Below are positions 5,678 through 61,766 of a stretch of DNA of 64,000 nt, piece after piece; the stretch's first letter is position 1, and each line of letters begins with the position of its first letter. The position numbers and the translations under genes were made by a program. Location of the stretch: positions 1 through 64,000 of the forward strand of contig CDROCS010005920.1 of the NCBI GenBank assembly GCA_977020255.1, read 5' to 3'. The DNA is from Obrimoposthia wandeli. Taxonomy: Eukaryota. The notes beneath the pieces are model-generated. The model searched no databases, was not told where the DNA came from, and saw only the letters and a list, made by a program, of their open reading frames with translations.

Positions 5678-5733
5678 CCTCAAGGAGTCCTCGCCTAACT
5701 TCACCTACCAGCAAAGCATGTAACCCTATTGGC

Positions 5734-8351: not shown

Positions 8352-8355
8352 GCAA

Positions 8356-13389: not shown

Positions 13390-13513
13390 AATGGAATAAG
13401 CCATGTCCGCATGGATGAAGATAATAGACTTTAATATATATTAAATTTCATTAATTTTACACTGTATTATATATATAAACTATAATACACTGTTTTTTAT
13501 TGAGGGGTTTAAT

Positions 13514-18018: not shown

Positions 18019-18063
18019 TTTTGGTTCTCGAAAAGGAAGAAACTCTATTATATAGTCTCTTCC

Positions 18064-18075
18064 TTTCATTTGAAA
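18064..18075. promoter_or_regulatory. Candidate YciT operator TTTCA-TT-TGAAA
   Basis: Palindrome upstream of yciT; same core at 21489 and 23337. Confidence 0.55.
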
Positions 18076-18092
18076 CCTAAGTGCAACTTAAG

Positions 18093-20516: not shown

Positions 20517-20518
20517 GA

Positions 20519-33067: not shown

Positions 33068-33756
33068 AACATAGGCTGCCTACGGAAGCAACCAACGATC
33101 TGTTAGTTTACTGTTCATCTATAGGCATAGACAGGTATCTTCCTGTCTATGCCTATAGATGAACCACTCAAAGCCCTTTTCAATCGACAGCAGGAATGGC
33201 TGACGTTCCTCAACAAACACATCGGTCACGTTCGTGAAGCGGTCATTAAGAATGTCACGAAGATGCTTGCCTGTGGCACTGCAACATTTGGCTCCCGAAA
33301 ATATACGTGCTCCAACACTCGCTGCTCCCACATCAAATTGATCAACCAAACCTGTAAGTCCAGAGCCTGCAATAGTTGTGGCACCAAAGCCACAGGGCGC
33401 TGGGTGCAAACTCCGCAATATGTCCTTCCTGATTGTGAATGGCAACACATCACCTTCACGATGCCCGGTTATGCCGCGATGCTGAAAGGGTATGTGAATG
33501 TTGACCCGTTTGAATGTGTGCTGTGCCAAAATCGGTTAGTTTTCAATGGGTATAGAGTCGGAACGCCGCTCTCCGAGTTGACGGCTTCGACGTTAGTGCA
33601 GGTGAGTATGCTGCCGGCCTGATGGCCGGTACGGAATAGGTGTATTCAAACGACGATAAAAAGGCAATATCTGTTTAATAATGCGCCGTTGAATGGCGAC
33701 GAAAAAAGTGCGGGCAATAACAGAGGTGAAAAAAGTCAGTTTGTGCCATGCTATGT
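33068..33756 (+). mobile_element. IS91-family element with an in-frame internal deletion of the catalytic domain (ORF 33149-33622); oriIS tip missing
   Basis: terIS AACATAGGCTGCC; zinc domain QTCKSRACNSCG..HITFTMP fused to GYAAMLKG..DPFEC. Confidence 0.85.
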
Positions 33757-43388: not shown

Positions 43389-43727
43389 ATGAAACTTATT
43401 GCCGTTACTGCTTGTATCAGTGGTGTTGCACACACATATATGGCCGCTGAGCAGCTGGAAAAGCTGTGCCGAAAAAAAGGTTTTCATATTAAGATTGAAA
43501 CTCAAGGAGCATTAGGCGTAGAGAATACTTTAAGCTGTGAGGATATTGACGCTGCAGTAATCGTCATCATTGCTGCTGATATCAACATAGAAGGTTTTGA
43601 GCGTTTCCAGCGTAATCGAATTATTAAACTATCGATAAAAACTCTCTTGAAAAATCCAAATGTCATTTTGTTTACCATTGATAAAATACGGAATGCTCCA
43701 CCGTCAACCGTTATTGAAATTACTTAA
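43389..43727 (+). CDS. frwD: PTS fructose-like EIIB, FrwD type
   Basis: AVTACISGVAHTYMAAEQLEKLC..IETQGALG.EN.L. Confidence 0.88.
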   Translation: MKLIAVTACISGVAHTYMAAEQLEKLCRKKGFHIKIETQGALGVENTLSCEDIDAAVIVIIAADINIEGFERFQRNRIIKLSIKTLLKNPNVILFTIDKIRNAPPSTVIEIT

Positions 43728-44582
43728 CTGGCTTCGATATTGAACCCGATATTCTGTCGGAGATCTACCTGTATTTAGACGGAAAATCCGACAAAAGTAA
43801 TTGCTATCACTAAATCCACAACGATGTGCTACTTCTTTTACTTTCATATCGTATCGCTGTAATAAATATTTGGCCCTTTCGAGGCGTGTTTGATTGAGGT
43901 ATGCATTGAAACGTATTTTCCCTTCTCGATGAAACAACTGCGATAAATAATTGGCTGATATATAAAATTGTGTAGCCACTAATTCTCTGGTTAATGGCTC
44001 TTGATAGTGTATCTTAATATACCCGCGAATTGCTTCGAATAACGTTTGACTACGCGAGAGGGTCTCTGGAGGGTGCTGAATAAGGTCTAGAGCATGACTC
44101 AGCAGCGCGCTGACAAGTAAACATGCAGTAAATTGATCTTCAGGATGCTTGGTGAGCTCTTCCAACGATCTAAGAATGAATGTTCCGATACGAGGGCCTC
44201 GTCGTTGAACACTCTCCTTACTTAGCACCTTGAAATTTTCGCCATCCCAGTGAAAAATACTGAATCCTAAGGTTTGTTTACCAAAAAGTAAGCTCAATAT
44301 CGTTGCGGGCTGCTGCCAATCAGCTTTATTCCAACTAAATGAAGGGAGAAACAACGCCTGTCCAAAAGTCAATTTTTCCGTATAGCTTTGTCCTTCACCG
44401 CCAATGTCCATAGGCACTACACCCTTGATGACTAATTCTAATCGGGGGAAATTGACCTGATAGGCTAACTCCGGTGGCTCTGATTGGTTTCCGGCAAAAA
44501 ACACTTGATTTAACTGAGTCGGATCATGAACGAAACGGTTCAACTCTTCATAAAGAAGTAGATCGTGAATTTTTGTAATCAT
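43704..44582 (-). CDS. yijO: AraC-family regulator YijO type
   Basis: YQVNFPRLELV, SLLFGKQ.LGFS, QRRGPR.G..I; convergent overlap with frwD as in E. coli. Confidence 0.88.
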   Translation of the reverse strand: MITKIHDLLLYEELNRFVHDPTQLNQVFFAGNQSEPPELAYQVNFPRLELVIKGVVPMDIGGEGQSYTEKLTFGQALFLPSFSWNKADWQQPATILSLLFGKQTLGFSIFHWDGENFKVLSKESVQRRGPRIGTFILRSLEELTKHPEDQFTACLLVSALLSHALDLIQHPPETLSRSQTLFEAIRGYIKIHYQEPLTRELVATQFYISANYLSQLFHREGKIRFNAYLNQTRLERAKYLLQRYDMKVKEVAHRCGFSDSNYFCRIFRLNTGRSPTEYRVQYRSQLSNFNNG

Positions 44583-45248: not shown

Positions 45249-46013
45249 TTAAACGTCTAAAAGCCATTTTTGGGCTGGAGTCAACTTACTCTCAGTCGCA
45301 TGAGTTAACCACCTTTTCTGATCTTGCTGCTGGTGATCATTTCTATCAGCATACAACCCGTGTAATACACGCCGACGAGTTCCAGCTTTGTTTATAGTAC
45401 CACCATGCCAAGTATGAGCATTAAAAATCAAGACACTTCCTGCAGAGCATTCCCAAACCACTTCATTAGGATGAGCTTGATTAAGATCATCTAATACGTC
45501 TTCAGGGAGGTCTGGACAATTATGTGTTCCAGGAATAATTCGAGGTGAACCATTCTCTGCACTTAAATCATCAACAGCCCAAAGCGCATTGACTAAATGA
45601 ACTTTAGGAAAATCTGGACGCGGTTTTTTCCAATCACCATGAAGTGGTTGATGCCCTCCATCTGGGTGTGCTTCACGAGCATTTAAACTTGAGATCTTAA
45701 ACTCTCCTTGGAATATGTGCTTGCATACAGCTAGAACAAGTGGATGAGCCCATACTTTTTCCCATACCGTCCCTTTGTTAATTAAGTTAGCTATTCGTGT
45801 CACCTTCTCTTCTGTATGGTGCTCAATAGCCAATTTACTGCCTTCATTTTCAACTTGTTTATCAAAATTTCGGCGCATTTCACTTAGCCAATCAGGATCG
45901 ATAACATTTGGAACAACTACAAATCCATTAGTATCTAGTTCATCTATCATTTGTTGTGTTAGCGTCATGTCTGCTCCAAGTGCAGATAAATGTTGTTGAG
46001 CAAGTGCTGACAT
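45249..46013 (-). CDS. Phytanoyl-CoA dioxygenase-family Fe(II)/2OG enzyme
   Basis: GFVVV, QPLHGD (HxD), WAVDD...ENGS..IIPGTH, FNAHTWHGG..N. Confidence 0.88.
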   Translation of the reverse strand: MSALAQQHLSALGADMTLTQQMIDELDTNGFVVVPNVIDPDWLSEMRRNFDKQVENEGSKLAIEHHTEEKVTRIANLINKGTVWEKVWAHPLVLAVCKHIFQGEFKISSLNAREAHPDGGHQPLHGDWKKPRPDFPKVHLVNALWAVDDLSAENGSPRIIPGTHNCPDLPEDVLDDLNQAHPNEVVWECSAGSVLIFNAHTWHGGTINKAGTRRRVLHGLYADRNDHQQQDQKRWLTHATESKLTPAQKWLLDV

Positions 46014-46417: not shown

Positions 46418-48304
46418 TTAAACAACAAAAGTAAATACTTTTTCATTCAATTTTATAGCTTGGTTACTTAGCACTTCTGCTTGACTACGAGCTGCAACAG
46501 CACCTTCTACAAGCTGATCTGTTACGTCTTTAATTGTGGTTGTATTTAATGTAATTTCACTTGTTACATGCGTTTGTTCTTCTGCTGCAGTAGCTATTTG
46601 TGTCGCCATATCACTAATTAAAGCCACTGAGTCGTTAATCTGCTCTAATGCTACTGTTGCTTGGTCTGCGTCGTCTACCGAACATTGCGCAAGCTGAGAG
46701 CTTGTTTCCATCAAGGCAACCGCTTTCGATGTTGTCTGTTGTAATGTCGCAATCATACTCTGAATTTCTTCAGTCGATGTATGAGTACGTTGAGATAACA
46801 CGCGTACTTCATCAGCCACAACAGCAAAACCTCGCCCTTGTTCACCCGCTCTTGCTGCTTCAATTGCAGCATTCAATGCCAATAAGTTTGTCTGTTCTGC
46901 AATACCTTGAATAGTAGATAAGATACTGTTGATGTTCTGAGCATGATCATTCAACTCACTAATCACAGTCGTTGCCTGATTCACTTCTTCTGCTAGATTG
47001 TTGATAGACACTCGGCTTTGTACAACTAACTCACGACCACTGTTTGTATACTCTGTCGAAACTTGTGCTGCACGCGCTGTTTGCTCTGCATGAGACGCAA
47101 TTTCTTGTGTAGCTGATGCCATTTCCGTTACCGCGGTGGCAACCATGCTGATTTCATCTTGCTGACGACTTAACTCATCAGCCGACTTATTCGCTCGGAA
47201 TTCACTTTCTGCCGAAGCCTGACTCAGCTCAACACCTTGGCTGCGAATATGACCAATAAGACCCTGTAAACTTGCTGTAAACTGGTTAAAATTACGGGCT
47301 AATTCACCGACCTCATCGTTAGAATCAATATTAATACGTTGAGTTAAATCACCACCGCCTTGTGCAATGACAGCCAGTGCTTTAGATACTTGCTGTAACG
47401 GTTTAAATAAATACACACAAAATAGGTTAAACAGAAACGCACAAATAACCACAACCAATAGCGTCATGAATATCTGTTCATATAATGAGCTGTAAAGAGG
47501 CGCGGCAACAGAATTATAATCAATAACAATAACTGTACTTAGACTTGTACCTTGAATTGGCTTAACAAACACATAGCTTTCATTACCTGTAATATTTTCT
47601 TTTTCAACTAGGCCTTCTCGCGCTAAACGTTTTAGCATTGAATAGGTTAAACCACGGTCTTGTGCACTAACAGATTGATTCAATAAAGACGTATCTGCGT
47701 GCGCAAAAAAATTACCTTCATCATTTACGATAAACATGTAGCCTTCACCAGGCAATACCACATCATCAAGTTGCTTGATGATATCTGACATTTCGACATC
47801 AGCACCTAGAACGGTCTGCTGCCCAAAAATAGAAATTGCTTTCCCCATAGAAACAACATTTGACCCTGTGGCCGCTGCAACGGTCGGATTTTCTATCGTC
47901 ACTTTACCATTAAGGTTAATCGCATTTTGATACCATTGCCATTGGCGAGGATCATTATCACCTGATGGTAAGATAACGTTATTTGCATTCACTTGTGTAC
48001 CATCAGAAAAAGCTAAAAAAACATTATCAAACCCTGCTGAATCGCGAACCTGCTGAAGATGTTGACCAAGCGTGTCTTGTGAAATATTCACAGGTATAGC
48101 GGAAAGTACTGTTCCTTTCGACTCTAACCAATTAGAAACATAATTATTGTACGAAGAAGCTGTACCATTAAGTTGCTTATTAATGTCACTATCTAAACGA
48201 CCTAGCGACGATAAAAAAGAAAAAGCAGTTACAAGTAAACCGCCGATAATGATTGCAATACTTGCAGAAAGAGCCAACTTTATTCTGAGTGTCATATTAA
48301 ACAT
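46418..48304 (-). CDS. Methyl-accepting chemotaxis protein (dCache-HAMP-MCP)
   Basis: 2 TM, YDPR.W.WY-like Cache motif (NDPRQWQWY), [34 protein letters not shown]. Confidence 0.95.
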
Positions 48305-48658: not shown

Positions 48659-49747
48659 TTATTTTTCACTACCAATACAATGTGCTGTCAAAATAGCTGA
48701 CAATACAGCATTTGGCGTTACATCAAATGGCATATTATGAATTGTTTCTCCTTCTGCGCAGGCAGCTTCGGCAACGTCCCTTAAATTATCAAGATTAATA
48801 TTTTTTATCCCCATATCGGTTAAATTAGTTGGTAACCCAACGCTTTTACAGAAATTAATAACTATATTAATTTCATCCATAGGTGCATTCTCAAGTACCA
48901 GTTGTACTAATGTACCAAAAGCGACTTTTTCACCATGGTATAGATTGTGGCATTCTTCTAGTTTGGTTAAGCCATTATGTATAGCATGGGCTGCGGCAAG
49001 ACCACTGCTTTCAAAACCAATACCACTTAGATATGTATTAGCTTCAACAATATTATCAACGGCTTTTGAAGACAGTCCGTTTTCGACAGCAATTTTGGCT
49101 TTCATACCATCAGCTAGTAGCGTTTCATAACACAGTTTGGCTAATGCTTGAGCTGAACGAGTCGGTGCACCACCGGCCATAGTCATTTTTCCCGAGATTG
49201 CATTAGCCCGAGCTTCAAAATGAGTAGAAAGTGCATCACCCATACCGGCCACCAATAAGCGAACAGGTGCCTGAGCAATGATCTTTGTATCCATGACCAC
49301 CATATTTGGATTGGTTGGTAGTAGCAAGTACTCGCTAAACTCACCTTCAGGCGTATAAATAACAGCAAGCGCACTCGTTGGTGCGTCAGAAGAGGCAATC
49401 GTAGGCACTAAAACGACCGGAATTTTATTGTAGAAAGCAATGGCTTTAGCTGTATCGAGTGTTTTTCCACCACCAATACCAATGACCACATCAGCATTGG
49501 CATTTTTGCTAATATCTAATAAGCGATTAATTTCAGGCTGAGAACATTCGCCATTAAATAGTTCCATTGTTAATGTCATGCAAGTGTTTTGGAAACTACT
49601 GTCCACGGTTCCGCCAACTAAGCCAGTAACAAACTCATCAGCGATAGCTATCGGTGCATTACCATAAGGCTTCACGTATTTAGCGAGTGAAGAAAGCACA
49701 TTTTCACCTTGAATATACTTACCCGGGCTGATAATTATTTTGTCCAT
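48659..49747 (-). CDS. gldA: Glycerol dehydrogenase (hydroxyacetone reductase)
   Basis: SPGKYIQG, GGGKTLDTAK, GMGDALST.FEA, AAAHAIHNGLT, HGEKVAFG. Confidence 0.95.
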   Translation of the reverse strand: MDKIIISPGKYIQGENVLSSLAKYVKPYGNAPIAIADEFVTGLVGGTVDSSFQNTCMTLTMELFNGECSQPEINRLLDISKNANADVVIGIGGGKTLDTAKAIAFYNKIPVVLVPTIASSDAPTSALAVIYTPEGEFSEYLLLPTNPNMVVMDTKIIAQAPVRLLVAGMGDALSTHFEARANAISGKMTMAGGAPTRSAQALAKLCYETLLADGMKAKIAVENGLSSKAVDNIVEANTYLSGIGFESSGLAAAHAIHNGLTKLEECHNLYHGEKVAFGTLVQLVLENAPMDEINIVINFCKSVGLPTNLTDMGIKNINLDNLRDVAEAACAEGETIHNMPFDVTPNAVLSAILTAHCIGSEK

Positions 49748-49826: not shown

Positions 49827-50756
49827 CTATTTTTTCAAAATACCGACAAATCGATCTTGTTCACAAACTATTAAAGCTGAAATTTTTTTCTCCTCCATCA
49901 ATTCCAATGCTGCATGAATCGATGTATCGGGAGTCGTCGTGATCGGTAGTGGAGAACTAATACTAGAAGCGTCTAAAACAAAAATTTCTTTTTGGTACTT
50001 TTCTATCGCTCGGCGCAGGTCACCATCAGTGATCACTCCCACAACCTCTTGATGTTCAACTACGAGGGCTAGACCTAGTTGCCCTGTCGAAATGACGGTT
50101 ATTACCTCTACAAGTGTGGTTTGACAACTAACAATCGGTAGGTTCTCAGTGATCATGTCATCACTGACCCGACCTAATAAGCGCCGACCCAGACTACCGC
50201 CAGGATGAAAGCGGGCAAAATTTTCGGGCCTGAATTGCCTTGCTTGCATTAAAGCGACTGTCAGTGCATCGCCCATGACTAAAGTGGCAGTTGTCGATGC
50301 GGTTGGTGCTAATTGGAAAGGACAAGCTTCCTGAGGAACTGAAATATTAAGATGGCAATGTGAATTACTAGCTAAAGTCGACCACTGTTTACCAGTAATA
50401 GCGATAATCTGATTATTGTTTTCTCGCAAGAAAGGAAGTAACTTAAGTACTTCATCGGTTTCGCCTGAATTGGAAATGGCGATAAAGATATCTTCAGATT
50501 TCACCATTCCCAGATCACCGTGGAAAGCTTCGGCAGGATGCATGAAAAAGCTAGGTGTACCGGTACTGGCTAACGAGGCGGCTATTTTTTTTCCAATAAT
50601 ACCTGACTTTCCCATTCCACATACAATGGTTCGGCCTTTTGTGGCTAGGATCATATTAACCGCTTGAGTAAAGTCGTCACCCAGATTATCCGCCATGAAT
50701 TGAAGACCACTGATCTCAGCTTGAATAACTTCTTTTGCAGTGTCTAATCGACTCAT
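49827..50756 (-). CDS. KpsF/GutQ-family sugar-phosphate isomerase (SIS + 2 CBS)
   Basis: GMGKSGIIGKKIAA, HPAEAFHGDLG, SGET, APTASTT, FHPGGSLG. Confidence 0.92.
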   Translation of the reverse strand: MSRLDTAKEVIQAEISGLQFMADNLGDDFTQAVNMILATKGRTIVCGMGKSGIIGKKIAASLASTGTPSFFMHPAEAFHGDLGMVKSEDIFIAISNSGETDEVLKLLPFLRENNNQIIAITGKQWSTLASNSHCHLNISVPQEACPFQLAPTASTTATLVMGDALTVALMQARQFRPENFARFHPGGSLGRRLLGRVSDDMITENLPIVSCQTTLVEVITVISTGQLGLALVVEHQEVVGVITDGDLRRAIEKYQKEIFVLDASSISSPLPITTTPDTSIHAALELMEEKKISALIVCEQDRFVGILKK

Positions 50757-51241
50757 GGCTTACCCTCTTCTGATTTTTCGTCTTGGCTTAGAAAACTGTT
50801 TAACACATCAATAATAAGCTGATGGTCTTCTGCCTGAGGCAGTCCTGAGATACTGATTGCACCTACGATTCCGACGTTACGAATGGTCAGCGGAAATGAA
50901 CCACCATAAGGAGCATATTCTTTAGGATCGACTAAAGAGCGCTCTTCAATAGTTTTACCTTTGGCCTTACATGCGTTGCCCATATACCAAGAGCTACACT
51001 GATAGCGTTTTACCACATTACGCTTACGTCGGATCCACTCAGAATTATCTATGGTGGTACCCTGCATGGCATAGAAAAACAAACATTGACCGTTGAACGT
51101 AATATCAATCGTAATATTGACTTCGCGTTGCTCAGCCAGTACTTTAATTGCTCCACCTAACTCCCAAGCGCGTTGGTGATTAAAGAAGTGAAATTGAAGA
51201 TGCTGTTCCTGTGCTGCGATTTCATTAAGTATGTCGTTCAT
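50753..51241 (-). CDS. UPF0303 / GlcG-HbpS-like (heme-degrading domain) protein
   Basis: DN..WIRRKRNVV.R...SSW, GGSFPL, VGAISISGLPQ.EDH. Confidence 0.85.
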   Translation of the reverse strand: MNDILNEIAAQEQHLQFHFFNHQRAWELGGAIKVLAEQREVNITIDITFNGQCLFFYAMQGTTIDNSEWIRRKRNVVKRYQCSSWYMGNACKAKGKTIEERSLVDPKEYAPYGGSFPLTIRNVGIVGAISISGLPQAEDHQLIIDVLNSFLSQDEKSEEGKP

Positions 51242-51281: not shown

Positions 51282-52322
51282 CTATAGATAGATCCGACGC
51301 TCTTGCTCATCGCTTCGATAGGCAGCTTCGATGATTTCAATGACAGCTAGTGCTTCTTTGGCTAAAACAGGTAATACAGAGCCGGTTCTGATCGCATCTG
51401 CAACTTGAAAGTAGAATTGCTCGTAACCTCCATGGCAAGTCGGAATGATTTCATTATGGGGTTGTTCATCAGAAATATAGCCAGCACAACCATACAACGC
51501 GGGCTTATCAACGCCCCACTCTAGACTCTCTGGGCCAATACTTTGTCGCAGAAGATCCTCTTGAAGATCCATGCCGTATTTTATGAAAGAACCTTTGTCG
51601 CCAAAGATTTGAAAACGTGGGCCGGGTGTTGTACTTAGGCAGTTACCATGCAAGATCACTTCTCGTGTCGGGTAGCTCAGGATGAGATGGAAATGATCAA
51701 CAGCTTGAGTTCCTATACGTTGATATCGCAAATGGGCATCAACAGAATCAGGCATACCAAAAAGCTGCAAAGCTTGATCTATCAGGTGTGAACCTAGGTC
51801 ATACAAAATTCCAGAGCCAGGCTCATCACGTTCTCGCCAACGTTCCTTAACATGTGGGCGATAACGGTTGTAATTGGAAATAAAAGTATGAACCTCACCT
51901 AATTTGCCTTTATCCATTAATTTTTTGATAGTAACAAAATCGCCATCAAAACGACGACTCTGATAAACTGTCAACAGTTTGTTCTGTTCTTTTGCTAATT
52001 GAATCAGTCTTTCACCTGAAGCACTATTAATCACGAAGGGTTTTTCAACCACAACATGTTTGCCTGCTCTAAGAGCCATCGCGGCCATAGCGTAATGTTT
52101 TTCGTTCGGGGTTGCGATGACGACAAGTTCTACCTCACTTTCTGTCAATACATTTTCAATGCTGCTATAAACTTCAACCTGAGGTAACACCGCTTTAACC
52201 TTGTCTGAGTTGCTTGATACAACGGCGGTTAAGTCCAGAGTAGGAACGGATTGAATCACAGGTGTTTGAAAGTAACGCCCGGATATTCCAAAACCGATGA
52301 GGGCTGTTTTGATTGGGTTCAT
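51282..52322 (-). CDS. Gfo/Idh/MocA oxidoreductase (YdgJ/IolW-like)
   Basis: LIGFG.SG, IATPN..H, GKHVVVEKP, YQSRRFDGDF, LYDLGSHLIDQ. Confidence 0.92.
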   Translation of the reverse strand: MNPIKTALIGFGISGRYFQTPVIQSVPTLDLTAVVSSNSDKVKAVLPQVEVYSSIENVLTESEVELVVIATPNEKHYAMAAMALRAGKHVVVEKPFVINSASGERLIQLAKEQNKLLTVYQSRRFDGDFVTIKKLMDKGKLGEVHTFISNYNRYRPHVKERWRERDEPGSGILYDLGSHLIDQALQLFGMPDSVDAHLRYQRIGTQAVDHFHLILSYPTREVILHGNCLSTTPGPRFQIFGDKGSFIKYGMDLQEDLLRQSIGPESLEWGVDKPALYGCAGYISDEQPHNEIIPTCHGGYEQFYFQVADAIRTGSVLPVLAKEALAVIEIIEAAYRSDEQERRIYL

Positions 52323-52448
52323 TCTGTTCTCGACACATGTTGAATTGGACATTGCTATATGAGAACAAAACATTCCCACAATATATCGCTTTGGAAAATA
52401 TAAGGTGGCATCCATATATGGAATGTCGCCATCTTATTTGTCACTAAT

Positions 52449-54959
52449 TTATTGCTCTAATTCAGTTTTAAGAATCTGCTCAACTTGCTCGACAGATTGA
52501 GCATCTAGCAAATTCTGTCGAAACTGTTCGTGCATAATACGACGGGCTAATTTTGAGAAAATTTTCATGTGCTGATCACCGGCCGCATGCTTGTTCAAGG
52601 TTAACATAATGACAAACTGCGCTTCGTCATCGCCCCACAAGATAGGTTTAGCCAGCCTTGTCACACTGATCGTCGACTGCTCAATGTGCTCACTTTTGGT
52701 ATGGGGAATAGCAAAGCCAAAGCCCAAACCGGTTGAGAACACATCTTCTCTTGCCCATAAATCGTCAGCCAACTTATTTTGATATCGGCAGCGACCGGCT
52801 AGGAACAGATTATCAGTCAGAGTCTTGAACACTTCTTCTTTGCTTCGTAGTTCAGCGTCAAGGGTAATGCACTCTTTGGTGATTAATGGTGCGTCAGTCT
52901 GCTCCATACGAAATTGAGCCAGCAGGTGTTCCACTTCTAACGTGGTGCGGCAGTTCATTGCTTTGTTAAGTAGTTGACGGCATAAACGGCTATCAAGCTT
53001 GGCGATACGCTCTTTCGTCGCCGGAATGCTGGGTGCACTCATACTAATTTCATCTAAACCCAGACCAACCAGTAATGGCAGAACCGACCCTTTGGCCCCT
53101 AATTCGCCACATAAACCAATCCACTTTCCATGACGGTGAACTTCTCTTACGACATGATCCAGAGTACGTAAAAATGCTGGGTTCAAGCTATTGTAGGTCT
53201 TTGTAACTTTGGCATTGTCACGATCGACGGCCATTAGATATTGGGTCAGGTCATTTGAGCCGATAGAGAAGAAGTCAATTTCTTCGCAGCACTGATCAAT
53301 AATGAAAGCGACAGATGGTACTTCCAGCATAATGCCCAATGGAATTTTTTCATCAAATGGGAGCTTTTCTTTACGAAGCTCCTGACGGACTTCGGCTAAT
53401 ACATCTTTCACCCAGAGGATTTCTTCAACAGATGAAATCATCGGAATCATGATTTTTAACGGGCCGTGGGCTGATGCACGTAAAATACTGCGTAGCTGGG
53501 TTTTGAATAGCTCGATAAACTCTTCGTAAATTCGTACTGCACGGTAGCCTAGAAATGGGTTTTTTTCTGCTGGGATCTTCAAGTAATCAACGGGCTTATC
53601 GCCACCGATATCGATAGTCCTTACGATAATAGGCTTGTCATTTGCCGCTTCAATCGCCTGACAAAAAATATTGTAGAGTTCGTCTTCATCCGGCGCGCTG
53701 GTGCGGTCCATGTAAAGCATTTCGGTACGGAAAAGGCCAACACTTTCTGCACCATTATTGAATGCCGGTTTGGCTTCAATAGCGTGTGCAATATTGGCGG
53801 CAATTTCAATTTTTATACCATCAGCCGTCTGACCTTGCTGCTCACGAAATAGGCTTTGTCGTTCAGCCACAATATTTGCAACTCGTTGCTCTTCTTGATA
53901 GTAACGAGTGACTTGTTCATTAATTTCAGTAACAACTAAGCCAAGATCGCCATCAAGCAAGACTTCTGAATCGAGATAGTCGGTGACAGAATTTTCATCA
54001 ATGCCAATCAGGGTCGGAATACCAAATGAACGAGCAAGGATAACCGTGTGTGATGTGCTGCCACCATGGGTGAGCATTAGCCCTTTCAACAGGCTCTTAT
54101 CTAGTTCCAGAAATTGGCTGGGTGTTAAGTCATCGGCCAAACAGATCGATGGCCCAGTAAGTATGAGCTTATTATCAAAGTGCTCTTCGCCATACACCGC
54201 TTGCAGCAACTGAAAACAGATATCACGAATATCCAGTTCACGCTCCCTCAGATAGCTGCTCGAAGAGTTCTGAAGTTGTGCGCAATAGTATTGAGCCGTG
54301 GCGATAATTGAGTTGGCACAACTCTGTTTGTCTTCACTCAGGTTCTGTCCCAGTTTTACACGAAACTCCTCATCGTTAAGAATAGATAAGTGTGCTTCAA
54401 TCACAGCAACTTCTGTACCTGCACCAACTTTCTTTTGTAAGGTGAGTGAGGAAGCCACTTTTTCAAGACCTTGAGCCAGCATGACTTGCTCTTCATCGTT
54501 GCTACGAGCAGATGGCAAATCGGTAAGTGCATCAAAGTTAATACTTCCCACACGCAGCAACTTACCTTGACCAATGCCCGTACTAACGGGACGTCCGCGA
54601 ACCAAACTAGGATTTAGATTGCTCAGGTTACGAGGAAGCGGTTCAAATTCACCATCATCACTCTCCGCGATTTCAAGCGCCTCGTCACAATGGGGGAATT
54701 CCTCTTTAATAAACCTGGTTAGCCGCTCAAATGCTGCGGCTTCATCTTCACCCTCAATGGTGATTAAACATTTATCACCATTGAGAGTATCGGTACCAAT
54801 AAGTGATAAAACACTTTTTGCGTTACCTACCACACCAGTGCGCTCATTTCTCCAATTAATAGCTGCTTTAAATTCATTACACAAAGCTTCTATATTGCTA
54901 GCAGGACGAGCATGTACACCATTAGGCAGCTCGCAGGAAAAGGTCAGGGTCTTAGCCAT
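52449..54959 (-). CDS. ptsA: Multiphosphoryl transfer protein HPr-EI-EIIA (PtsA/FrwA)
   Basis: LPNGVHARPAS, TSHTVILARS, GLFRTEML, DFFSIGSNDLTQY, AIPHTKS. Confidence 0.95.
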   Translation of the reverse strand: MAKTLTFSCELPNGVHARPASNIEALCNEFKAAINWRNERTGVVGNAKSVLSLIGTDTLNGDKCLITIEGEDEAAAFERLTRFIKEEFPHCDEALEIAESDDGEFEPLPRNLSNLNPSLVRGRPVSTGIGQGKLLRVGSINFDALTDLPSARSNDEEQVMLAQGLEKVASSLTLQKKVGAGTEVAVIEAHLSILNDEEFRVKLGQNLSEDKQSCANSIIATAQYYCAQLQNSSSSYLRERELDIRDICFQLLQAVYGEEHFDNKLILTGPSICLADDLTPSQFLELDKSLLKGLMLTHGGSTSHTVILARSFGIPTLIGIDENSVTDYLDSEVLLDGDLGLVVTEINEQVTRYYQEEQRVANIVAERQSLFREQQGQTADGIKIEIAANIAHAIEAKPAFNNGAESVGLFRTEMLYMDRTSAPDEDELYNIFCQAIEAANDKPIIVRTIDIGGDKPVDYLKIPAEKNPFLGYRAVRIYEEFIELFKTQLRSILRASAHGPLKIMIPMISSVEEILWVKDVLAEVRQELRKEKLPFDEKIPLGIMLEVPSVAFIIDQCCEEIDFFSIGSNDLTQYLMAVDRDNAKVTKTYNSLNPAFLRTLDHVVREVHRHGKWIGLCGELGAKGSVLPLLVGLGLDEISMSAPSIPATKERIAKLDSRLCRQLLNKAMNCRTTLEVEHLLAQFRMEQTDAPLITKECITLDAELRSKEEVFKTLTDNLFLAGRCRYQNKLADDLWAREDVFSTGLGFGFAIPHTKSEHIEQSTISVTRLAKPILWGDDEAQFVIMLTLNKHAAGDQHMKIFSKLARRIMHEQFRQNLLDAQSVEQVEQILKTELEQ

Positions 54960-55424: not shown

Positions 55425-56504
55425 GTGAATGACCTCATCAAAATCTTAAAAAACACTAGGCAACACCTAATGACAGGTGTTTCACATATGATCCCGTTTG
55501 TTGTTGCCGGCGGCATCTTATTGGCAGCATCTGTAATGCTTTATGGTGAAGGTGCTGTACCTGAAAATGGAACCTGGCTTCATGACTTATTCTTTATCGG
55601 TGTCGCCGGCTTCCAACTTATGGTTCCTTTTCTGGCCGCTTATATTGGCTACTCGATTGCTGACCGCTCAGCATTAGCACCATCGGCCATTGCCGCCTTT
55701 GTCGGTGCAAATATGTACAACACTGGCTTTTTCGGTGCCATTTTTGCTGGCCTGCTCGGTGGTATTGTTGTTTTCTATTTGAAGAAGATAAAAGTACCGT
55801 CATTTGCACGTTCAGTGATGCCAATCTTCGTCATTCCTATCATTGGTACTTTTATTACTGCTGGTGCAATTGTCTGGGGGATCGGTGCACCTATAGGTGC
55901 AATGACAGCATCATTGACTGAATTCCTAAAAGAAATGCAAGGCTCCAGCATTGTAGTGTTGGCTATCATCATAGGGTTGATGATCTCCTTTGATATGGGC
56001 GGACCGGTTAATAAAGTCGCCTATGCGTTCGTTATTCTTTGTGTAGGTGAAGGCCTTTACGATGTTGCCGGTATTAGTTCCGTTGCTGTCGCAGTTCCAT
56101 CTGTAGGTATGGGCCTCGCCACCTTCCTAGGTAAAAAATTGTATGACGATAGTGAGCGAGAAGCTGGTCGTGCTTCCATTCTGATGGGTACGATGGGTAT
56201 CACTGAAGGGGCTATCCCATTTGCTGCCGCCGATCCGTTACGTGTACTTCCTTCAATCATGATTGGTACCGCTTGCGGTGCTGCGACTGCCGCCGTATTA
56301 GGAGTTAAAAGCTATGCCGCCTGGGGTGGCCTGATTGTGTTACCCGTGGTTGATGGCCGCTTTGGGTTCATCATTGCACTGGCTGTTGGTTCGGTTTCAA
56401 CTGCATTAATCGTGAATTTTCTTAAGAAATATACTCGTCAGACACAATCCAAAGTAGACCCAAACCACTCAGGTGAACTGGACCTAGATATTGATATTGG
56501 TTAA
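55425..56504 (+). CDS. frwC: PTS fructose-like EIIC
   Basis: RQHLMTGVSHMIPFVVAGG, FDMGGPVNK, GITEGAIPFAAADP. Confidence 0.92.
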   Translation: MNDLIKILKNTRQHLMTGVSHMIPFVVAGGILLAASVMLYGEGAVPENGTWLHDLFFIGVAGFQLMVPFLAAYIGYSIADRSALAPSAIAAFVGANMYNTGFFGAIFAGLLGGIVVFYLKKIKVPSFARSVMPIFVIPIIGTFITAGAIVWGIGAPIGAMTASLTEFLKEMQGSSIVVLAIIIGLMISFDMGGPVNKVAYAFVILCVGEGLYDVAGISSVAVAVPSVGMGLATFLGKKLYDDSEREAGRASILMGTMGITEGAIPFAAADPLRVLPSIMIGTACGAATAAVLGVKSYAAWGGLIVLPVVDGRFGFIIALAVGSVSTALIVNFLKKYTRQTQSKVDPNHSGELDLDIDIG

Positions 56505-56583: not shown

Positions 56584-56916
56584 ATGATGAAAAAAGTTAT
56601 TGCTGTTACCGCTTGCCCATCTGGCGTTGCTCATACCTATATGGCTGCAGAAGCAATTGAAACTTCAGCTAAGGCTAAAGGCTGGGAATGCAAGGTAGAA
56701 ACCCAAGGCTCAATTGGTATTGAAAATGAATTGACCGACGATGAAATAACTGCGGCAGATATTGTGATCCTCACCAAAGATATTGGTATCAAAGGCGAAG
56801 ATCGCTTCCAGGGTAAAACCGTTGTCCGCGTTGGTGTGAGCGATGCAGTTAAACGTGCAGATGCTGTAATGGCTAAAATTGAAGCGCACTTTACCAAAGT
56901 AGATGCAAACGCTTAA
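56584..56916 (+). CDS. frwB: PTS fructose-like EIIB
   Basis: AVTACPSGVAHTYMAAE, KVETQGSIG. Confidence 0.92.
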   Translation: MMKKVIAVTACPSGVAHTYMAAEAIETSAKAKGWECKVETQGSIGIENELTDDEITAADIVILTKDIGIKGEDRFQGKTVVRVGVSDAVKRADAVMAKIEAHFTKVDANA

Positions 56917-57017: not shown

Positions 57018-59327
57018 ATGAGTACAGCCCGGATCAATCACCTTAAATCTTCCCTTTTTGATGCCAAGCGTGAGATTTCTCTCGAACGAGCACTTCTATA
57101 CACAGAAAGTCATCAGCAGACCGACGGTGAACCAACACTCATTCGTCGAGCTAAAGCTACATCTCATGTGATGGACAATGTTGAGATCTCCATTCGGGAA
57201 AATGAGCTCCTCGCAGGTAACCGCACAGTAAAACCTCGCGTAGGGATAGTGTCACCTGAAATGGACCCCTATTGGATCGACAAAGAGCTGGATATTTTTC
57301 CTTCTCGCCCACAAGACAAGTTTGATATCTCCGAGCAAGACAAAAATATCTATCGCCAGCAGTTGCTACCGTATTGGTCACAACGCTCGATGAAGGATTT
57401 TATCAATAGTCAATTTCCTGATGAGATCCGAGAAGCAACCAGCCAGAAAGTATTTTCAGTTAACCAGACTGACAAAGGCCAAGGGCACATCATCATTGAC
57501 TATGATCGTCTGTTGGAAAATGGTTTGGGTCGCCTTACCGATGAGATGACAACGTTAGCAACACAAAATCCAGGTAACCATTTCTACACGGCAGTTCAGT
57601 TGTTACTCGAAGCAAGCACCCGACACATCTGCCGCTATGAGCAATTAGCCCAGGAGATGGCTGATAGCCTTGAGCATGAAGGAAAAATGGAACGCGCTGC
57701 TGAATTAAAGCACATTGCTGAAATCTCGGCCAAAATAGCTATTGAGCCGCCAGAAACATTTTATGAAGCATGCCAGTTATTCTGGTACATGAACATTATT
57801 CTGCAATACGAATCCAATGCGAGTTCTCTTTCTCTGGGCCGTTTTGATCAGTACATGTTGCCATTTTATCGCGCATCACTAGATGCAGGTGAAGATCCAG
57901 CCTTCCTGCAAGAGTTACTGGAAAGTCTGTGGGTTAAGATGAATGACATTGTGCTGTTGCGTTCGACAAACAGTGCCAAGTTCTTTGCCGGGTTTCCAAC
58001 CGGATACACGATATTGCTTGGTGGATTGAACGAAACAGGTCATAGCGCCGTCAACGAACTATCTACTCTATGTCTGGACTCTTACCAAAATATTCAACTG
58101 CCTCAGCCAAACTTAGGTGTGCGTATCAACGAACTGATCGACCGTCAGTTCTTACAAAAAACCGCTGAAACCATCCGATTGGGGACCGGTATACCTCAAA
58201 TATTTAATGACGAAGTGGTGGTACCTGCCTTCCTGAACCGTGGTGTCTCTCTCGAAGATGCCCGTGACTATTCTGTCGTGGGTTGTGTGGAATTATCTAT
58301 TCCGGGTAAGACTTATGGCTTGCATGATATTGCGATGTTTAATCTACTTAAAGTCATGGAGCTGGTTCTTAAGCGTAATCAACATAACTCGGACGTGAGT
58401 TATGACAGCTTGGTTGAACAAATTCGTGACGATATCTGCCACTACGTAAAACTGATGGCTGAAGGCTCGAATATTTGTGATATTGGCCATCGAGATTGGG
58501 CTCCAGTACCACTTCTTTCCTCTTTCATCAATGACTGTATCGAAAATGGACAAGATATTACTAACGGTGGAAGTCGTTATAACTTCTCGGGCGTACAGGG
58601 GATAGGTATCGCTAACCTGTCAGATTCACTTCATGCACTGAAGAAATTTGTGTTCGAAGAGAAACGCATGAGCTACGCAGATTTCATTGAAACGCTGGAC
58701 TGCAATTTCGAAAATGAAGGTGGAGACAAAGTCCGTGCTCGACTGATCAATCGTTACGAGAAGTTCGGTAATGACATCGATGATGTAGACATGATCAGTG
58801 CCGACTTATTACGCCTGTTCTGTAAAGAAGTCGAGCAATACGATAATCCACGTGGTGGTAAATTTACCCCCGGTTCGTATACCGTCTCAGCCCACATACC
58901 ACTCGGGCAAGTGGTGGGTGCTACACCTGATGGACGGTTAGCGAAAGAGCAGCTGGCCGACGGCGGTCTGTCACCTATGCTCGGTCAAGATCAGACCGGA
59001 CCGACCGCGGTACTCAAGTCAGTCAGCAAACTTGATAACTATCTGTTGTCCAATGGCAGCCTGCTCAACGCCAAGTTTACGCCAAGCACACTTGAAGGTG
59101 AGCAAGGCATTAACAAGCTGTGTGATTTCTTACATGCATTCATGAAGCTTAAGTTACAGCACATTCAGTTTAACGTGCTCAACGCTGACACGCTCAAAAA
59201 AGCACAAGAAAATCCAGGAGATTATGCTGGTTTGGTGGTACGAGTTGCCGGGTACAGTGCGTTTTTTGTTGAGTTGTCCAAAGAAATCCAGGACGACATT
59301 ATTCGTCGAACTGCCCATGAGCTGTAA
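57018..59327 (+). CDS. pflD: Glycyl-radical enzyme PflD type (1,5-anhydromannitol-6-P ring-opening enzyme by homology)
   Basis: REISLERALLYT.SH.QT.GEP, NQTDKGQGHII, VVGCVELS, RVAGYSAFFVEL. Confidence 0.93.
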   Translation: MSTARINHLKSSLFDAKREISLERALLYTESHQQTDGEPTLIRRAKATSHVMDNVEISIRENELLAGNRTVKPRVGIVSPEMDPYWIDKELDIFPSRPQDKFDISEQDKNIYRQQLLPYWSQRSMKDFINSQFPDEIREATSQKVFSVNQTDKGQGHIIIDYDRLLENGLGRLTDEMTTLATQNPGNHFYTAVQLLLEASTRHICRYEQLAQEMADSLEHEGKMERAAELKHIAEISAKIAIEPPETFYEACQLFWYMNIILQYESNASSLSLGRFDQYMLPFYRASLDAGEDPAFLQELLESLWVKMNDIVLLRSTNSAKFFAGFPTGYTILLGGLNETGHSAVNELSTLCLDSYQNIQLPQPNLGVRINELIDRQFLQKTAETIRLGTGIPQIFNDEVVVPAFLNRGVSLEDARDYSVVGCVELSIPGKTYGLHDIAMFNLLKVMELVLKRNQHNSDVSYDSLVEQIRDDICHYVKLMAEGSNICDIGHRDWAPVPLLSSFINDCIENGQDITNGGSRYNFSGVQGIGIANLSDSLHALKKFVFEEKRMSYADFIETLDCNFENEGGDKVRARLINRYEKFGNDIDDVDMISADLLRLFCKEVEQYDNPRGGKFTPGSYTVSAHIPLGQVVGATPDGRLAKEQLADGGLSPMLGQDQTGPTAVLKSVSKLDNYLLSNGSLLNAKFTPSTLEGEQGINKLCDFLHAFMKLKLQHIQFNVLNADTLKKAQENPGDYAGLVVRVAGYSAFFVELSKEIQDDIIRRTAHEL

Positions 59328-60195
59328 CGATGTGCCTGCAGCGACCCAAAAACACAATGAGCAAATGGGGCGTGTATTTAATATTCAGCGCTATTCGCTC
59401 AATGATGGCCAGGGTATTCGCACTGTAGTGTTTTTCAAGGGATGCCCGCTGAGTTGTCCTTGGTGTGCTAACCCGGAATCACGCTCACCGAAACAACAAG
59501 TGATCAAGCGGGAGGCAAAGTGCATTCATTGTGACGTTTGTGTACTTGATACAAAAGAAAGCATTGATGAGTGCCCAAGTGGTGCCCTAGAGGTTATCGG
59601 TAACGACATGACGTTAGATGAGATTGTCGCTGAAATTGAAAAAGACAGCGTCTTTTTCCGCACCTCCGGTGGTGGCGTTACCCTGTCTGGGGGCGAGGTA
59701 ATGGCTCAAGCCCCTTTTGTTATCGAACTCGCGAAACGTCTCAAAGCGTTGAATTATCCAGTCGCGATAGAGACCACGGGACAAGGCAATCAAAAGCATT
59801 TATTAGCATTGGGAAATTTGTGCAATGAAGTGCTGTTTGACTTCAAAATCATGAATGCAGAACGAGCAAAATCTATCACGGGGATTGATTTGCCAAAGGT
59901 ACTCGATAACTTTAAGGCATTGATTAGAGCGGGTGTGAATGTAACCCCTCGTTTACCTCTCATTCCAGGCTATACCCTAGATTTGATAAATGTAGATCAG
60001 GTATTACGATTCTTACAACCTTTTGAACTCAAAGAGATGCATTTACTACCCTTTCACCAATACGGGGAAAACAAATACGACAATTTAAATTTAAATTACT
60101 TATTAAAAGACGTACGGGTTCCATCTCCAAGTGAAATTGAAGCGATCCGCCGTCACGTAGAAGCCGCAGGCTATCAAATCATTATTGGAGGTTAA
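59317..60195 (+). CDS. pflC: GRE activating radical-SAM enzyme
   Basis: FNIQRYSLNDGQGIR, CPLSCPWC, DECPSGAL, GGGVTLSGGE; overlaps the pflD stop. Confidence 0.92.
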   Translation: MSCNDVPAATQKHNEQMGRVFNIQRYSLNDGQGIRTVVFFKGCPLSCPWCANPESRSPKQQVIKREAKCIHCDVCVLDTKESIDECPSGALEVIGNDMTLDEIVAEIEKDSVFFRTSGGGVTLSGGEVMAQAPFVIELAKRLKALNYPVAIETTGQGNQKHLLALGNLCNEVLFDFKIMNAERAKSITGIDLPKVLDNFKALIRAGVNVTPRLPLIPGYTLDLINVDQVLRFLQPFELKEMHLLPFHQYGENKYDNLNLNYLLKDVRVPSPSEIEAIRRHVEAAGYQIIIGG

Positions 60196-60200
60196 TTCTG

Positions 60201-61061
60201 ATGAAAAAGAAAATTTTACTTACGGGTGCCAGCGGTTTTTTCGGTACGCGATTTATTAAAGCGTACCAGCACCAATTTGAGGTTCATGCAACAGATGTTA
60301 AACAATTAGACATCACAAATAACGAACAAGTGATGACAATTTTTGCTGACATCAAGCCTGACTATGTTATCCATGCCGCTGCCATTGCCGTTACGGACTT
60401 TTGCAATAAAAAACCAGAGCTTGCCCATAAAGTCAATGTACAAGGCGCGATCAACGTTGCCAAAGCTTGTCGTAAAATGGGCAGCAAACTGGTCTTTATC
60501 AGTACCGAACAGGTGTTCAACGGTAACAAAGAGCTTGGTCCCTATACGGAAAACGACGTTCCTGAACCAGATACAGTTTACGGCCAAAACAAATTAGAAG
60601 CGGAAGGAAAATTAAAAGAGATTTTAGATGAGCTTTGGACTATTCGATTCACTTGGTTATTCGGTTTACCTGAACGCCAGACTAATATCAATCCAAATGT
60701 AGTTTGGAATACGCTGCAAAGCCTTATTTCAGGGACAAAAATGTTAGAGCGGACCGATGAATTCCGTGGCCTGACCTATGTTCACGAACTAATTGATCAG
60801 TTTGATAAAATATTTGAAATCCCTTACGGCACCTACCATGTTGGTGCCCAGAATGACCTAAGCCGCTATGAGATTACGCGTCACATTCTAGTTAAGCTTG
60901 GGCAAGAAGATCGCTTAGACCAACTACTTGAAGGTATCGATACCCCAACTGTACGTGATATTCGCCTTGATACATCTAAGATCGCCTCACACGGCATTAC
61001 TTTTACTGACAGCCGTGAAGCAATCAATAACTGCTTGGGTGAATTTAGTTTTAATATTTGA
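60201..61061 (+). CDS. RmlD-like extended SDR NAD(P)-dependent reductase
   Basis: TGASGFFG, HAAA...D.C, ISTEQVF.G, YGQNK (YxxxK), G.YHV. Confidence 0.85.
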   Translation: MKKKILLTGASGFFGTRFIKAYQHQFEVHATDVKQLDITNNEQVMTIFADIKPDYVIHAAAIAVTDFCNKKPELAHKVNVQGAINVAKACRKMGSKLVFISTEQVFNGNKELGPYTENDVPEPDTVYGQNKLEAEGKLKEILDELWTIRFTWLFGLPERQTNINPNVVWNTLQSLISGTKMLERTDEFRGLTYVHELIDQFDKIFEIPYGTYHVGAQNDLSRYEITRHILVKLGQEDRLDQLLEGIDTPTVRDIRLDTSKIASHGITFTDSREAINNCLGEFSFNI

Positions 61062-61088
61062 TTATTTTTAATATTTGGAGTTTAAACA

Positions 61089-61766
61089 ATGATTTACATG
61101 CTAGACACTGCAAACCTTGACGCTATCGCTAAAGCTGTAGATTTTTATCCTCTTGCAGGGGTTACAACCAACCCATCGATTATTGCGAAAGAAAATCGCC
61201 CACTACGTGATATTTTATTCGATATCCGCGAAATTATCGGTCACTTGCGAATGTTACATGTGCAAGTAATTGGTAAAACAGCAGATGTGATGGTGAAGGA
61301 AGCCAATATACTGCATAATATTGATGAAAACTTAATAATCAAAGTACCTGTAACAACTGAAGGTATGAAAGCTATTCGTTTGCTTGCAGCAGATGGTTTT
61401 CGAGTAACAGCAACTGCAATTCTTACTCCACAACAAGCACTTATGGCTGCAGTTGCGGGAGCTGAGTTTTTAGCCCCTTATGTTAATCGCTTAGATAACA
61501 TCTGCGGTGATGGTGTAAAAGTTACGAAAGAAATGGTTCAGCTACTTGACCATTACAACCTGAGTTCAAAAGTTTTGGCTGCATCATTCAAAAATGTTCA
61601 GCAAGTTCAAGATGTAGCAAAGGTTGGTGCGCAATCCATTACTGTCGCCCCTGACGTATTTGATTTACTCATTCAGCATCCATTAACTAATTCAGGTGTT
61701 GCTAGTTTTACCAGTGACTGGGAAAGTGTTTACGGCAAAGGAACGACAATTTTAGATATAATCTAG
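61089..61766 (+). CDS. fsa: Fructose-6-phosphate aldolase (FSA, not transaldolase)
   Basis: LDTAN, GVTTNPS, IKVP Schiff-base Lys; FSA-type Gln (HVQV) and Tyr (APYVNR) instead of transaldolase Glu/Phe. Confidence 0.9.
   Translation: MIYMLDTANLDAIAKAVDFYPLAGVTTNPSIIAKENRPLRDILFDIREIIGHLRMLHVQVIGKTADVMVKEANILHNIDENLIIKVPVTTEGMKAIRLLAADGFRVTATAILTPQQALMAAVAGAEFLAPYVNRLDNICGDGVKVTKEMVQLLDHYNLSSKVLAASFKNVQQVQDVAKVGAQSITVAPDVFDLLIQHPLTNSGVASFTSDWESVYGKGTTILDII

Follow-up and report, generated by a model that had tools for sequence, protein, structure and literature searches.

The glycyl radical enzyme (GRE) PflD is a C-O lyase acting on 1,5-anhydromannitol-6-phosphate (AM6P), and its product, 1-deoxyfructose-6-phosphate, is cleaved by aldolases of the fructose-6-phosphate aldolase (FSA) type to glyceraldehyde-3-phosphate and hydroxyacetone (PMC13450708, PMC12441222). 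This work concerns a gene that lies within an operon for this pathway and encodes an RmlD-like short-chain dehydrogenase/reductase (SDR); it was found in positions 1 to 64,000 of the forward strand of contig CDROCS010005920.1 from the Obrimoposthia wandeli assembly GCA_977020255.1 (this whole 64,000-nucleotide stretch is referred to here as the window). The pathway facts were taken from the two reviews cited above, both of which cite Ma et al. 2024. The scheme they give consists of a phosphotransferase system (PTS), PflD, FSA, and GldA, and the statement in an initial annotation of the window that the described pathway has no reduction step of the RmlD type is true of both reviews. In E. coli, the anhydroglycolysis locus comprises gldA-fsaB-ptsA, frwC-frwB-pflD-pflC-frwD, and yijO. 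The window encodes orthologues of PtsA, FrwC, FrwB, PflD, PflC, FrwD, YijO, FSA, and GldA, whereas the E. coli locus contains no SDR, UPF0303, Gfo/Idh/MocA, KpsF-like, or PhyH gene.

The reaction that we propose for the SDR has a known parallel in Sinorhizobium, where 1,5-anhydro-D-fructose (AF) reductase (AFR; EC 1.1.1.292; structures 2GLX and 4KOA) converts AF and NADPH to 1,5-anhydromannitol (AM) (PMC12441222). Unlike the SDR, AFR has a Gfo/Idh/MocA fold, takes the unphosphorylated sugar, and belongs to an aerobic hydroxylation route to mannose. No homology was found between the SDR and known AF reductases (the Gfo/Idh/MocA-type AFR and AKR1E; EC 1.1.1.292/263); 2GLX and 4KOA match the neighboring Gfo/Idh/MocA family instead. 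If the proposal is correct, the SDR would correspond to AFR in function without homology to it and would depend on the phosphate. Our analysis partly supports the initial annotation, in which the SDR was put forward as a new catabolic enzyme that might reduce PTS-imported AF-6-phosphate (AF-6-P) to AM6P. Synteny, phylogeny, and residue conservation indicate a new, conserved accessory catabolic reductase that is distinct, tied to the PflD operon, and not the RmlD of a polysaccharide pathway; the substrate part stays a proposal.

Separation of the SDR from RmlD

In the list of open reading frames (ORFs) of the window, the SDR begins with ATG at 60201, and GGAGG lies ∼9 nt upstream of this codon. 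The stop codon of pflC (TAA, 60193-60195) is separated from the SDR start by a 5-base gap (60196-60200), and the SDR stop codon (TGA, 61059-61061) is followed by 27 bases before the ATG of fsa at 61089. Residues 9 to 15 read GASGFFG and residues 127 to 131 read YGQNK, with S101 completing the catalytic triad. Both the spacing and the intact GxxGxxG and YxxxK motifs had been noted at first annotation and are confirmed by these positions. Because the Pfam model RmlD_sub_bind (PF04321) matches residues 4 to 279 with 164.9 bits and an E value of 2.8e-48 (gathering cutoff, 27), a chance ORF can be ruled out. Short RNA contigs from one marine-sediment metatranscriptome (90 to 98% identity) bridge both the pflC/SDR junction (60112-60379) and the SDR/fsa junction (60996-61200); this is consistent with one transcript, DNA carry-over being a possible alternative. 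A promoter and terminator scan gave matches at or below shuffled expectation.

The AlphaFold2 model of the SDR (pLDDT, 85.5) has an RmlD fold, with TM scores of 0.83 to 0.88 to RmlD-type structures. RmlD itself (TIGR01214; 1KBZ, 3SC6, and 4WPG; Foldseek TM, 0.83 to 0.86) shares with the SDR the extended-SDR fold, a length of ∼290 residues, GxxGxxG, and the S/T-Y-K triad, whose roles in RmlD have been described (PMC4832382). RmlD reduces a pyranose-ring ketone adjoining the carbon that bears the ring oxygen, and the same is predicted for the SDR. However, the two are only 22 to 28% identical, the RmlD model leaves the last 50 SDR residues unaligned, and the SDR has no rmlABC context but lies in a catabolic operon with a PTS and a GRE.

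Relatives of the SDR were gathered by searching 1.84 billion cluster representatives exhaustively. Matches down to ∼28% identity align to the SDR over its full length, while typical RmlDs align only to residue ∼230 to 240. Against the RmlD equivalog model TIGR01214 (curated cutoff, 224.05 bits), the SDR scored 152.6 bits over residues 4 to 237 only, and six relatives with an S-S/T-D/E-Q motif scored 113 to 131 bits; four cluster representatives carrying the STDYVF motif scored 258 to 320 bits, above the cutoff. In a maximum-likelihood tree of 141 sequences, a branch with 99% SH-aLRT support splits a 26-row RmlD group from a 115-row EQ/DQ group, and the pflD-linked SDRs form a clade of their own, also with 99% support. 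Clustering with true RmlD, which the initial annotation had named as one outcome that would speak against a new enzyme, was therefore not observed.

Residue conservation was compared over 93 SDR-clade, 84 DQ-group, and 14 RmlD sequences. G9/G12/G15, S101, Y127, and K131 are invariant in the SDR clade and universal across all groups, as are R149, W152, and R252. By contrast, A63, F67, E103, N109, T125, N130, W146, F150, W169, R238, and D253 are invariants private to the SDR clade. Position 103 is Glu in 100% of the SDR clade and Asp in 100% of both the RmlD and the DQ groups, so that the motif following the catalytic Ser reads STEQVFNGN in the SDR versus STDYVF in RmlD, with Q104 in place of Tyr. 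R222 and R255 are also invariant in the clade, though not private to it (Arg222 occurs in 43% of RmlDs and Arg255 in 25% of the DQ group). Such clade-specific changes, at or beside the catalytic motifs, point to a changed substrate relative to RmlD. On sequence evidence, the SDR is not an RmlD but belongs to a separate, tightly conserved family.

The best solved match of the SDR is a Trichomonas vaginalis protein, 9GPI/9GSC (E value of 5.6e-51 over the full length, ∼33% identity, TM of 0.86 to 0.88), which is probably TVAG_357160. No paper on 9GPI/9GSC was found in the literature search, and the source organism was read off the names of clusters and the title given by Foldseek. TvRED of T. vaginalis is an NADPH-dependent 4-ketoreductase of UDP-4-keto-6-deoxyglucose (PMC9741107). 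Like the SDR, it falls within the non-RmlD S-S-D/E-Q superclade; unlike the SDR, it sits on a distant DQ branch, lacks E103, N109, T125, N130, W146, and W169, and has no operon context. Since TvRED lies outside RmlD and yet acts on a UDP-sugar, failure to fit the RmlD model is not enough on its own to exclude a nucleotide sugar as the substrate of the SDR.

Operon context and natural gene losses

The best 120 SDR matches are 58 to 86% identical and come from Photobacterium, Vibrio, Aeromonas, Pseudovibrio, and Clostridia. To survey context, 80 genomic loci with an SDR orthologue (50 to 86% identity) were fetched, and neighbors were counted within 10 kb. These loci come from Gammaproteobacteria (Vibrionaceae, Endozoicomonas, and Hahella), Alphaproteobacteria (Pseudovibrio and Cohaesibacter), many Clostridia, and Spirochaetes, such that the SDR/GRE synteny spans four phyla. 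A PflD-like GRE was present in 59 of the 80 loci (51 of these GREs being at least 55% identical), an activase in 61, FSA in 51, a UPF0303 protein in 41, and a Gfo/Idh/MocA gene in 26. The GRE nearest the SDR is of the PflD type (AM6P lyase) in 56 loci and of the YbiW type, a lyase of 1,5-anhydroglucitol-6-phosphate (AG6P), in 2. A PTS is likewise among the conserved neighbors. The SDR is oriented like pflD, pflC, and fsa, and it usually starts 3 to 60 bp after pflC and ends 17 to 60 bp before fsa.

The association extends to more distant relatives. One SDR relative, 46% identical, lies in the gene order PTS-GRE-activase-SDR-FSA, and relatives at 46 to 53% identity occur in PTS-GRE-SDR-FSA, mannose-family PTS-SDR-DeoC-phosphomannose isomerase (PMI), or ABC transporter-ROK kinase-GRE-SDR contexts; below ∼40% identity, the sugar context is gone. 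In Spirochaetes, an ABC transporter and a ROK-family kinase take the place of the PTS, and the SDR still adjoins a divergent PflD-like GRE (∼40% identical to PflD, with uncertain specificity). In one of these loci (L077), the ROK kinase gene and the SDR gene share 20 nt at the 3' end of the latter. In proteobacteria, the UPF0303 gene is a neighbor of ptsA, and in several Clostridia it immediately precedes the SDR. Six Clostridial loci (L045, L050, L053, L059, L063, and L065) contain a module of Gfo/Idh/MocA, DeoR, a Cof-type HAD phosphatase, UPF0303, and SDR genes with no GRE within 10 kb; it lies at ∼5 to 10 kb in these loci, upstream of the SDR, and is flanked by housekeeping genes. A contig of gut Eubacterium type (L082:4196-10962) carries GntR, a mannose-family PTS (IIA, IIB, IIC, and IID), an SDR of 49% identity, a DeoC-family aldolase, PMI, and C_GCAxxG, again with no GRE.

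Natural gene losses separate the SDR from the core pathway. The gene order in both Vibrio sp. Of14-4 (L025) and V. hepatarius (L028) is IIC-IIB-SDR-IIB-AraC-PhyH-PMI, with an SDR intact at 285 residues, and no trace of pflD, pflC, or fsa was found in 20 kb of either locus; the related V. zhanjiangensis (L024) carries the full gene set. In both species, then, the genes on either side of the SDR have been lost, and the SDR has been kept with the PTS. Conversely, the SDR is missing from the E. coli locus, from 57 E. coli-type PflD loci in metagenomes, and from a Vibrio-type contig (L088) whose gene groups UPF0303-PtsA, FrwC-FrwB-PflD-PflC-FSA-FrwD, and YijO include both PflD and FSA. Because it is kept without PflD and FSA and missing where both are present, the SDR stands outside the core lyase and aldolase chemistry. 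This pattern of gene content indicates that the SDR is an accessory of the PflD operon, working with the uptake system and independent of the lyase and the aldolase. Both AM and 1,5-anhydroglucitol (AG) reportedly support growth of E. coli (PMC12441222), which lacks the SDR; the SDR must therefore add a substrate.

Gene content of the window

The features discussed here are collected in Table 1. From left to right, the locus runs frwD, AraC/YijO, PhyH-like, chemotaxis protein, gldA, KpsF/GutQ-like, UPF0303, Gfo/Idh/MocA, and ptsA, followed divergently by frwC, frwB, pflD, pflC, the SDR gene, and fsa. The window PflD matches E. coli PflD (8YJO) with 1290.6 bits and 74% identity, by which it is judged a true orthologue. 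For pflC, the start is most likely at 59317 (292 residues, with an 11-nt overlap with pflD, as in E. coli) rather than at the first ATG (59224); the alignment of E. coli PflC begins at 59317. The window Gfo/Idh/MocA protein shares a superfamily with Sinorhizobium AFR, but only distantly, matching 2GLX and 4KOA with E values of ∼1e-11 to 1e-12, and its best matches are uncharacterized YvaA/YhhX-type proteins. Profile scores bear out the PflD, activase, and FSA assignments of the initial annotation, which overlooked gldA, the PhyH-type oxygenase, UPF0303, and the KpsF-like isomerase, all of them relevant to interpretation. Its remark that the window holds no rmlABC or other polysaccharide gene was borne out: a scan of nearly all ORFs of at least 140 residues over the 64 kb found neither rmlA, rmlB, or rmlC nor any glycosyltransferase or further polysaccharide gene. 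What the scan did turn up were a second glycyl radical cluster, insertion sequence (IS) transposases, regulators, a lipase, and a GMC oxidoreductase.

Table 1. Positions of the features discussed (in the window unless a locus identifier precedes the coordinates)
Feature	Location	Strand	Evidence or remark
IS elements	89..1225; 4935..6479; 11807..13404; 15757..16737; 33149..33622
GMC oxidoreductase with small upstream ORF	7812..9927 (GMC, 8356..9927)	+
Second anhydro-sugar cluster: DeoR regulator, YbiW, activase	17278..21418 (YbiW and activase, 18093..21418)	-	YbiW 1270 bits to 8ID7
PtsG-type IIBC	23469..24860	+
FrwD-type second PTS EIIB, away from usual site after fsa	43389..43727	+	NF007747 136 bits; 50% identity to E. 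coli FrwD
AraC-family regulator, YijO orthologue	43704..44582	-	55% identity to E. coli YijO
PhyH-like Fe/2-oxoglutarate oxygenase	45249..46013	-	weak TIGR04436 match; 66-75% identity to PF05721 family of 15 loci
Methyl-accepting chemotaxis protein	46418..48304	-
GldA, hydroxyacetone/1,2-propanediol dehydrogenase	48659..49747	-	NF006941 542.5 bits; 57% identity to E. coli GldA
KpsF/GutQ-family sugar-phosphate isomerase	49827..50756	-	TIGR00393 328 bits
UPF0303/HbpS-like ("heme-degrading domain") protein	50753..51241	-	PF03928 105.6 bits; NF002696 200 bits
Gfo/Idh/MocA oxidoreductase, YvaA/YdgJ type; rival candidate AF reductase	51282..52415	-	Pfam domains; NF008607 350 bits
PtsA, fused HPr-EI-EIIA, divergent from frwC	52449..54959	-	Pfam HPr, PEP-utilizers, EIIA_2; 66% identity to E. 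coli PtsA
FrwC-type PTS EIIC	55425..56504	+	NF007787 576.2 bits
FrwB-type PTS EIIB	56584..56916	+	NF007783 183.7 bits
PflD, AM6P C-O lyase, GRE	57018..59327	+	NF007437 1463.7 bits; function PMC13450708
PflC, radical-SAM activase of PflD	59317..60195	+	NF007483 418.1 bits; 53% identity to E. coli PflC
SDR, RmlD-like extended SDR, 286 aa; putative keto-sugar-6-phosphate reductase of PflD pathway	60201..61061	+	PF04321, TIGR01214, AlphaFold2 model, own clade
FSA-type aldolase, predicted to cleave 1-deoxyfructose-6-phosphate	61089..61766	+	PF00923 177.6 bits; NF009299 220.7 bits, cutoff 214
PhyH/PMI regions	L025:12514-14519; L028:11896-13900; L024:13131-15155; window 45249-46013	window, -
Spirochaete SDR/GRE loci	L077:9998-11831; L078:11104-15567; L076:10128-14231

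In the second cluster, the GRE is judged by its score a true YbiW orthologue and hence an AG6P lyase. This cluster contains no SDR; of the two lyase clusters in the window, only the PflD operon carries one.

Several further observations concern the arrangement of the locus. The frwD and AraC regulator genes, which in E. coli and in other Vibrionaceae loci follow fsa, lie in the window beyond the ptsA operon, on its far side, at 43389-44582, 17 kb away from 61766-62112. The window is rich in IS elements, which suggests that an IS-mediated rearrangement displaced both genes. The chemotaxis protein gene falls inside the ptsA-side gene string, and in Clostridium sp. C8-1-8 and C. manihotivorum another methyl-accepting chemotaxis protein gene immediately precedes pflD (L033:4962-6290, minus strand); such genes beside the pathway may serve chemotaxis towards its substrate. 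Some GMC pyranose oxidases oxidize anhydroglucitol to anhydrofructose. The window has a GMC gene with a small upstream ORF, and another GMC gene lies beside the GRE of a Spirochaete locus (L077:5537-7436, minus strand); the two GMC proteins share only 26% identity, which is generic, and a link was rejected as probably coincidental.

Proposed substrate, rival explanations, and implications

We propose that the SDR is an NAD(P)H-dependent, RmlD-fold ketoreductase that has departed from nucleotide-sugar biosynthesis, is now accessory to PflD anhydroglycolysis, and reduces AF-6-P to AM6P. Of the mechanisms considered, this one fits best, and we hold this reading, built from sequence and context, to stand evenly between right and wrong. 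Alpha-1,4-glucan lyases release AF as their primary product, and GH31 glucosidases form it on the side. In the proposed route, AF would be imported and phosphorylated by the Frw-type PTS, after which the SDR, by means of its S101/Y127/K131 triad, would turn the ketone at C2 of AF-6-P into an axial alcohol, yielding AM6P. PflD would then open AM6P to 1-deoxyfructose-6-phosphate, FSA would cleave this to glyceraldehyde-3-phosphate and hydroxyacetone, and GldA would reduce the hydroxyacetone. We infer substrate, stereochemistry, and reaction direction alike, and stereochemistry is beyond sequence prediction. The occurrence of the SDR with a PTS and a manno-specific lyase fits a ring-ketone reduction of AF-6-P to AM6P. 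When the ring is followed from its oxygen, the ketone and phosphate of AF-6-P (O-CH2-C(=O)-CHOH-CHOH-CH-CH2OPO3) are placed much as in the 4-keto-6-deoxyhexose-1-phosphate part of the RmlD substrate, and this resemblance is a chemical argument in the same direction. The universal R252, together with the further conserved arginines, would suit a site that binds phosphate but no nucleotide. In addition, the relatives of the SDR are ketoreductases of pyranose-ring ketones (PMC4832382, PMC9741107).

A PhyH-type oxygenase (PF05721) follows AraC/YijO in 15 Vibrionaceae and Hahella loci and also occurs in the window; PMI is present in 8 loci. The oxygenase is often followed by a type-I PMI, and both are kept with the SDR and the PTS after loss of pflD, pflC, and fsa. 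This suggests an oxygen-dependent bypass, in which the oxygenase would hydroxylate AM6P at C1 to give mannose-6-phosphate, to be isomerized to fructose-6-phosphate. The AF-to-AM-to-mannose route of Sinorhizobium parallels such a bypass (PMC12441222). Taken as a whole, the scheme would have an RmlD-fold SDR acting on a plain sugar phosphate and funneling PTS-imported AF to AM6P, which would pass through PflD, FSA, and GldA under anoxic conditions and through PhyH and then PMI or the KpsF-like isomerase under oxic conditions; this fuller scheme is tentative and, in our estimate, rather doubtful.

Several points weigh against the reduction of AF-6-P by the SDR. About a quarter of the 80 loci have no GRE within 10 kb, some of these being on truncated contigs, and the gut Eubacterium cluster, with its SDR, PMI, and DeoC aldolase but no GRE, has no known route for AM6P, a hint that the substrate may be another one or more varied. 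We know of no precedent in the RmlD fold family for a nucleotide-free substrate. The closest characterized relative, TvRED, acts on a UDP-sugar (PMC9741107), and the Gfo/Idh/MocA protein encoded nearby comes from the one family with a proven AF-to-AM reductase (PMC12441222). PTS uptake of AF is likewise undocumented in the literature searched (Ma et al. 2024, the original account of the pathway, excepted); in the same search, phosphorylated anhydrofructose was not mentioned, and a link from AF to glycyl radical enzymes was found nowhere beyond a 2025 review. The Eubacterium cluster suggests that the wider SDR clade reduces other keto-hexose phosphates and may itself represent a different, non-radical keto-sugar pathway.

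The last point leads to an alternative that we consider unlikely, in which the SDR of the PflD operon, too, would reduce another keto-hexose-6-phosphate (glucosone-6-phosphate to mannose-6-phosphate, or a 3-keto intermediate made by the Gfo/Idh/MocA enzyme), with AF-6-P as a side substrate at most. The co-occurrence of PMI in 8 Vibrionaceae loci and in the GRE-less Eubacterium cluster speaks for it, as do the 26 loci with a Gfo/Idh/MocA gene. However, most loci have neither PMI nor a Gfo gene within 10 kb, and an ordinary hexose phosphate product would leave unexplained both the close fit of the SDR between pflC and fsa, which recurs across phyla, and the bias toward AM6P lyases. That bias speaks for a still less probable reading, according to which the SDR is a 2-epimerase interconverting AG6P and AM6P via transient oxidation, alone like GalE or together with the Gfo/Idh/MocA enzyme, and so feeds abundant AG to PflD; the extended-SDR superfamily does include redox epimerases. 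Yet AG6P is taken directly by YbiW in the window and by a YbiW or YbiW-like second GRE in one other locus (L001), the characterized enzymes of the RmlD clade are all reductases, and in the GRE-less Vibrio loci a manno form followed by PMI would be a detour.

Reduction of small carbonyl end products (hydroxyacetone or methylglyoxal), by which the SDR would replace or supplement GldA, is very improbable. The SDR gene adjoins fsa much as gldA adjoins fsaB in E. coli, and most SDR loci lack gldA within 10 kb; but gldA accompanies the SDR in the window and in six other loci, so the SDR is no replacement for GldA. We rejected a substitute role for this reason and because the SDR is retained at loci that have lost the aldolase and, with it, hydroxyacetone. 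Moreover, the SDR is of the extended type, has a complete substrate domain, and conserves many arginines, which makes an acetol reductase unlikely. The slimmest chance of all goes to an ordinary nucleotide-sugar 4-ketoreductase of the RmlD or TvRED type whose operon position is meaningless. The RmlD_sub_bind match, the RmlD fold, and a nearest solved relative that reduces a UDP-4-keto sugar (PMC9741107) are what such an enzyme would show. Against this stand the synteny over four phyla, the lack of rml or glycosyltransferase genes in the window, the TIGR01214 score under the cutoff, the separate clade, and the altered substrate-contact residues.

AM has been described as non-physiological in mammals (PMC12441222), and no natural source of it is stated in the literature searched (Ma et al. 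2024 excepted). If the SDR does convert AF-6-P to AM6P, it would be the first RmlD-fold enzyme to act on a nucleotide-free sugar phosphate. Annotation is also at stake, as hundreds of database entries name this SDR family "dTDP-4-dehydrorhamnose reductase." Ma et al. 2024 reportedly engineered routes from starch to 1,2-propanediol, which such an SDR could extend. For the bacteria that carry the operon, largely marine or sediment dwelling judging by their names, an AF-to-AM6P reductase would supply the missing entry point to the PflD pathway and would fit its spread among them: AF from algal and fungal glucan lyases would then be what naturally feeds this pathway, for which the rare sugar anhydromannitol is so far the sole known substrate.

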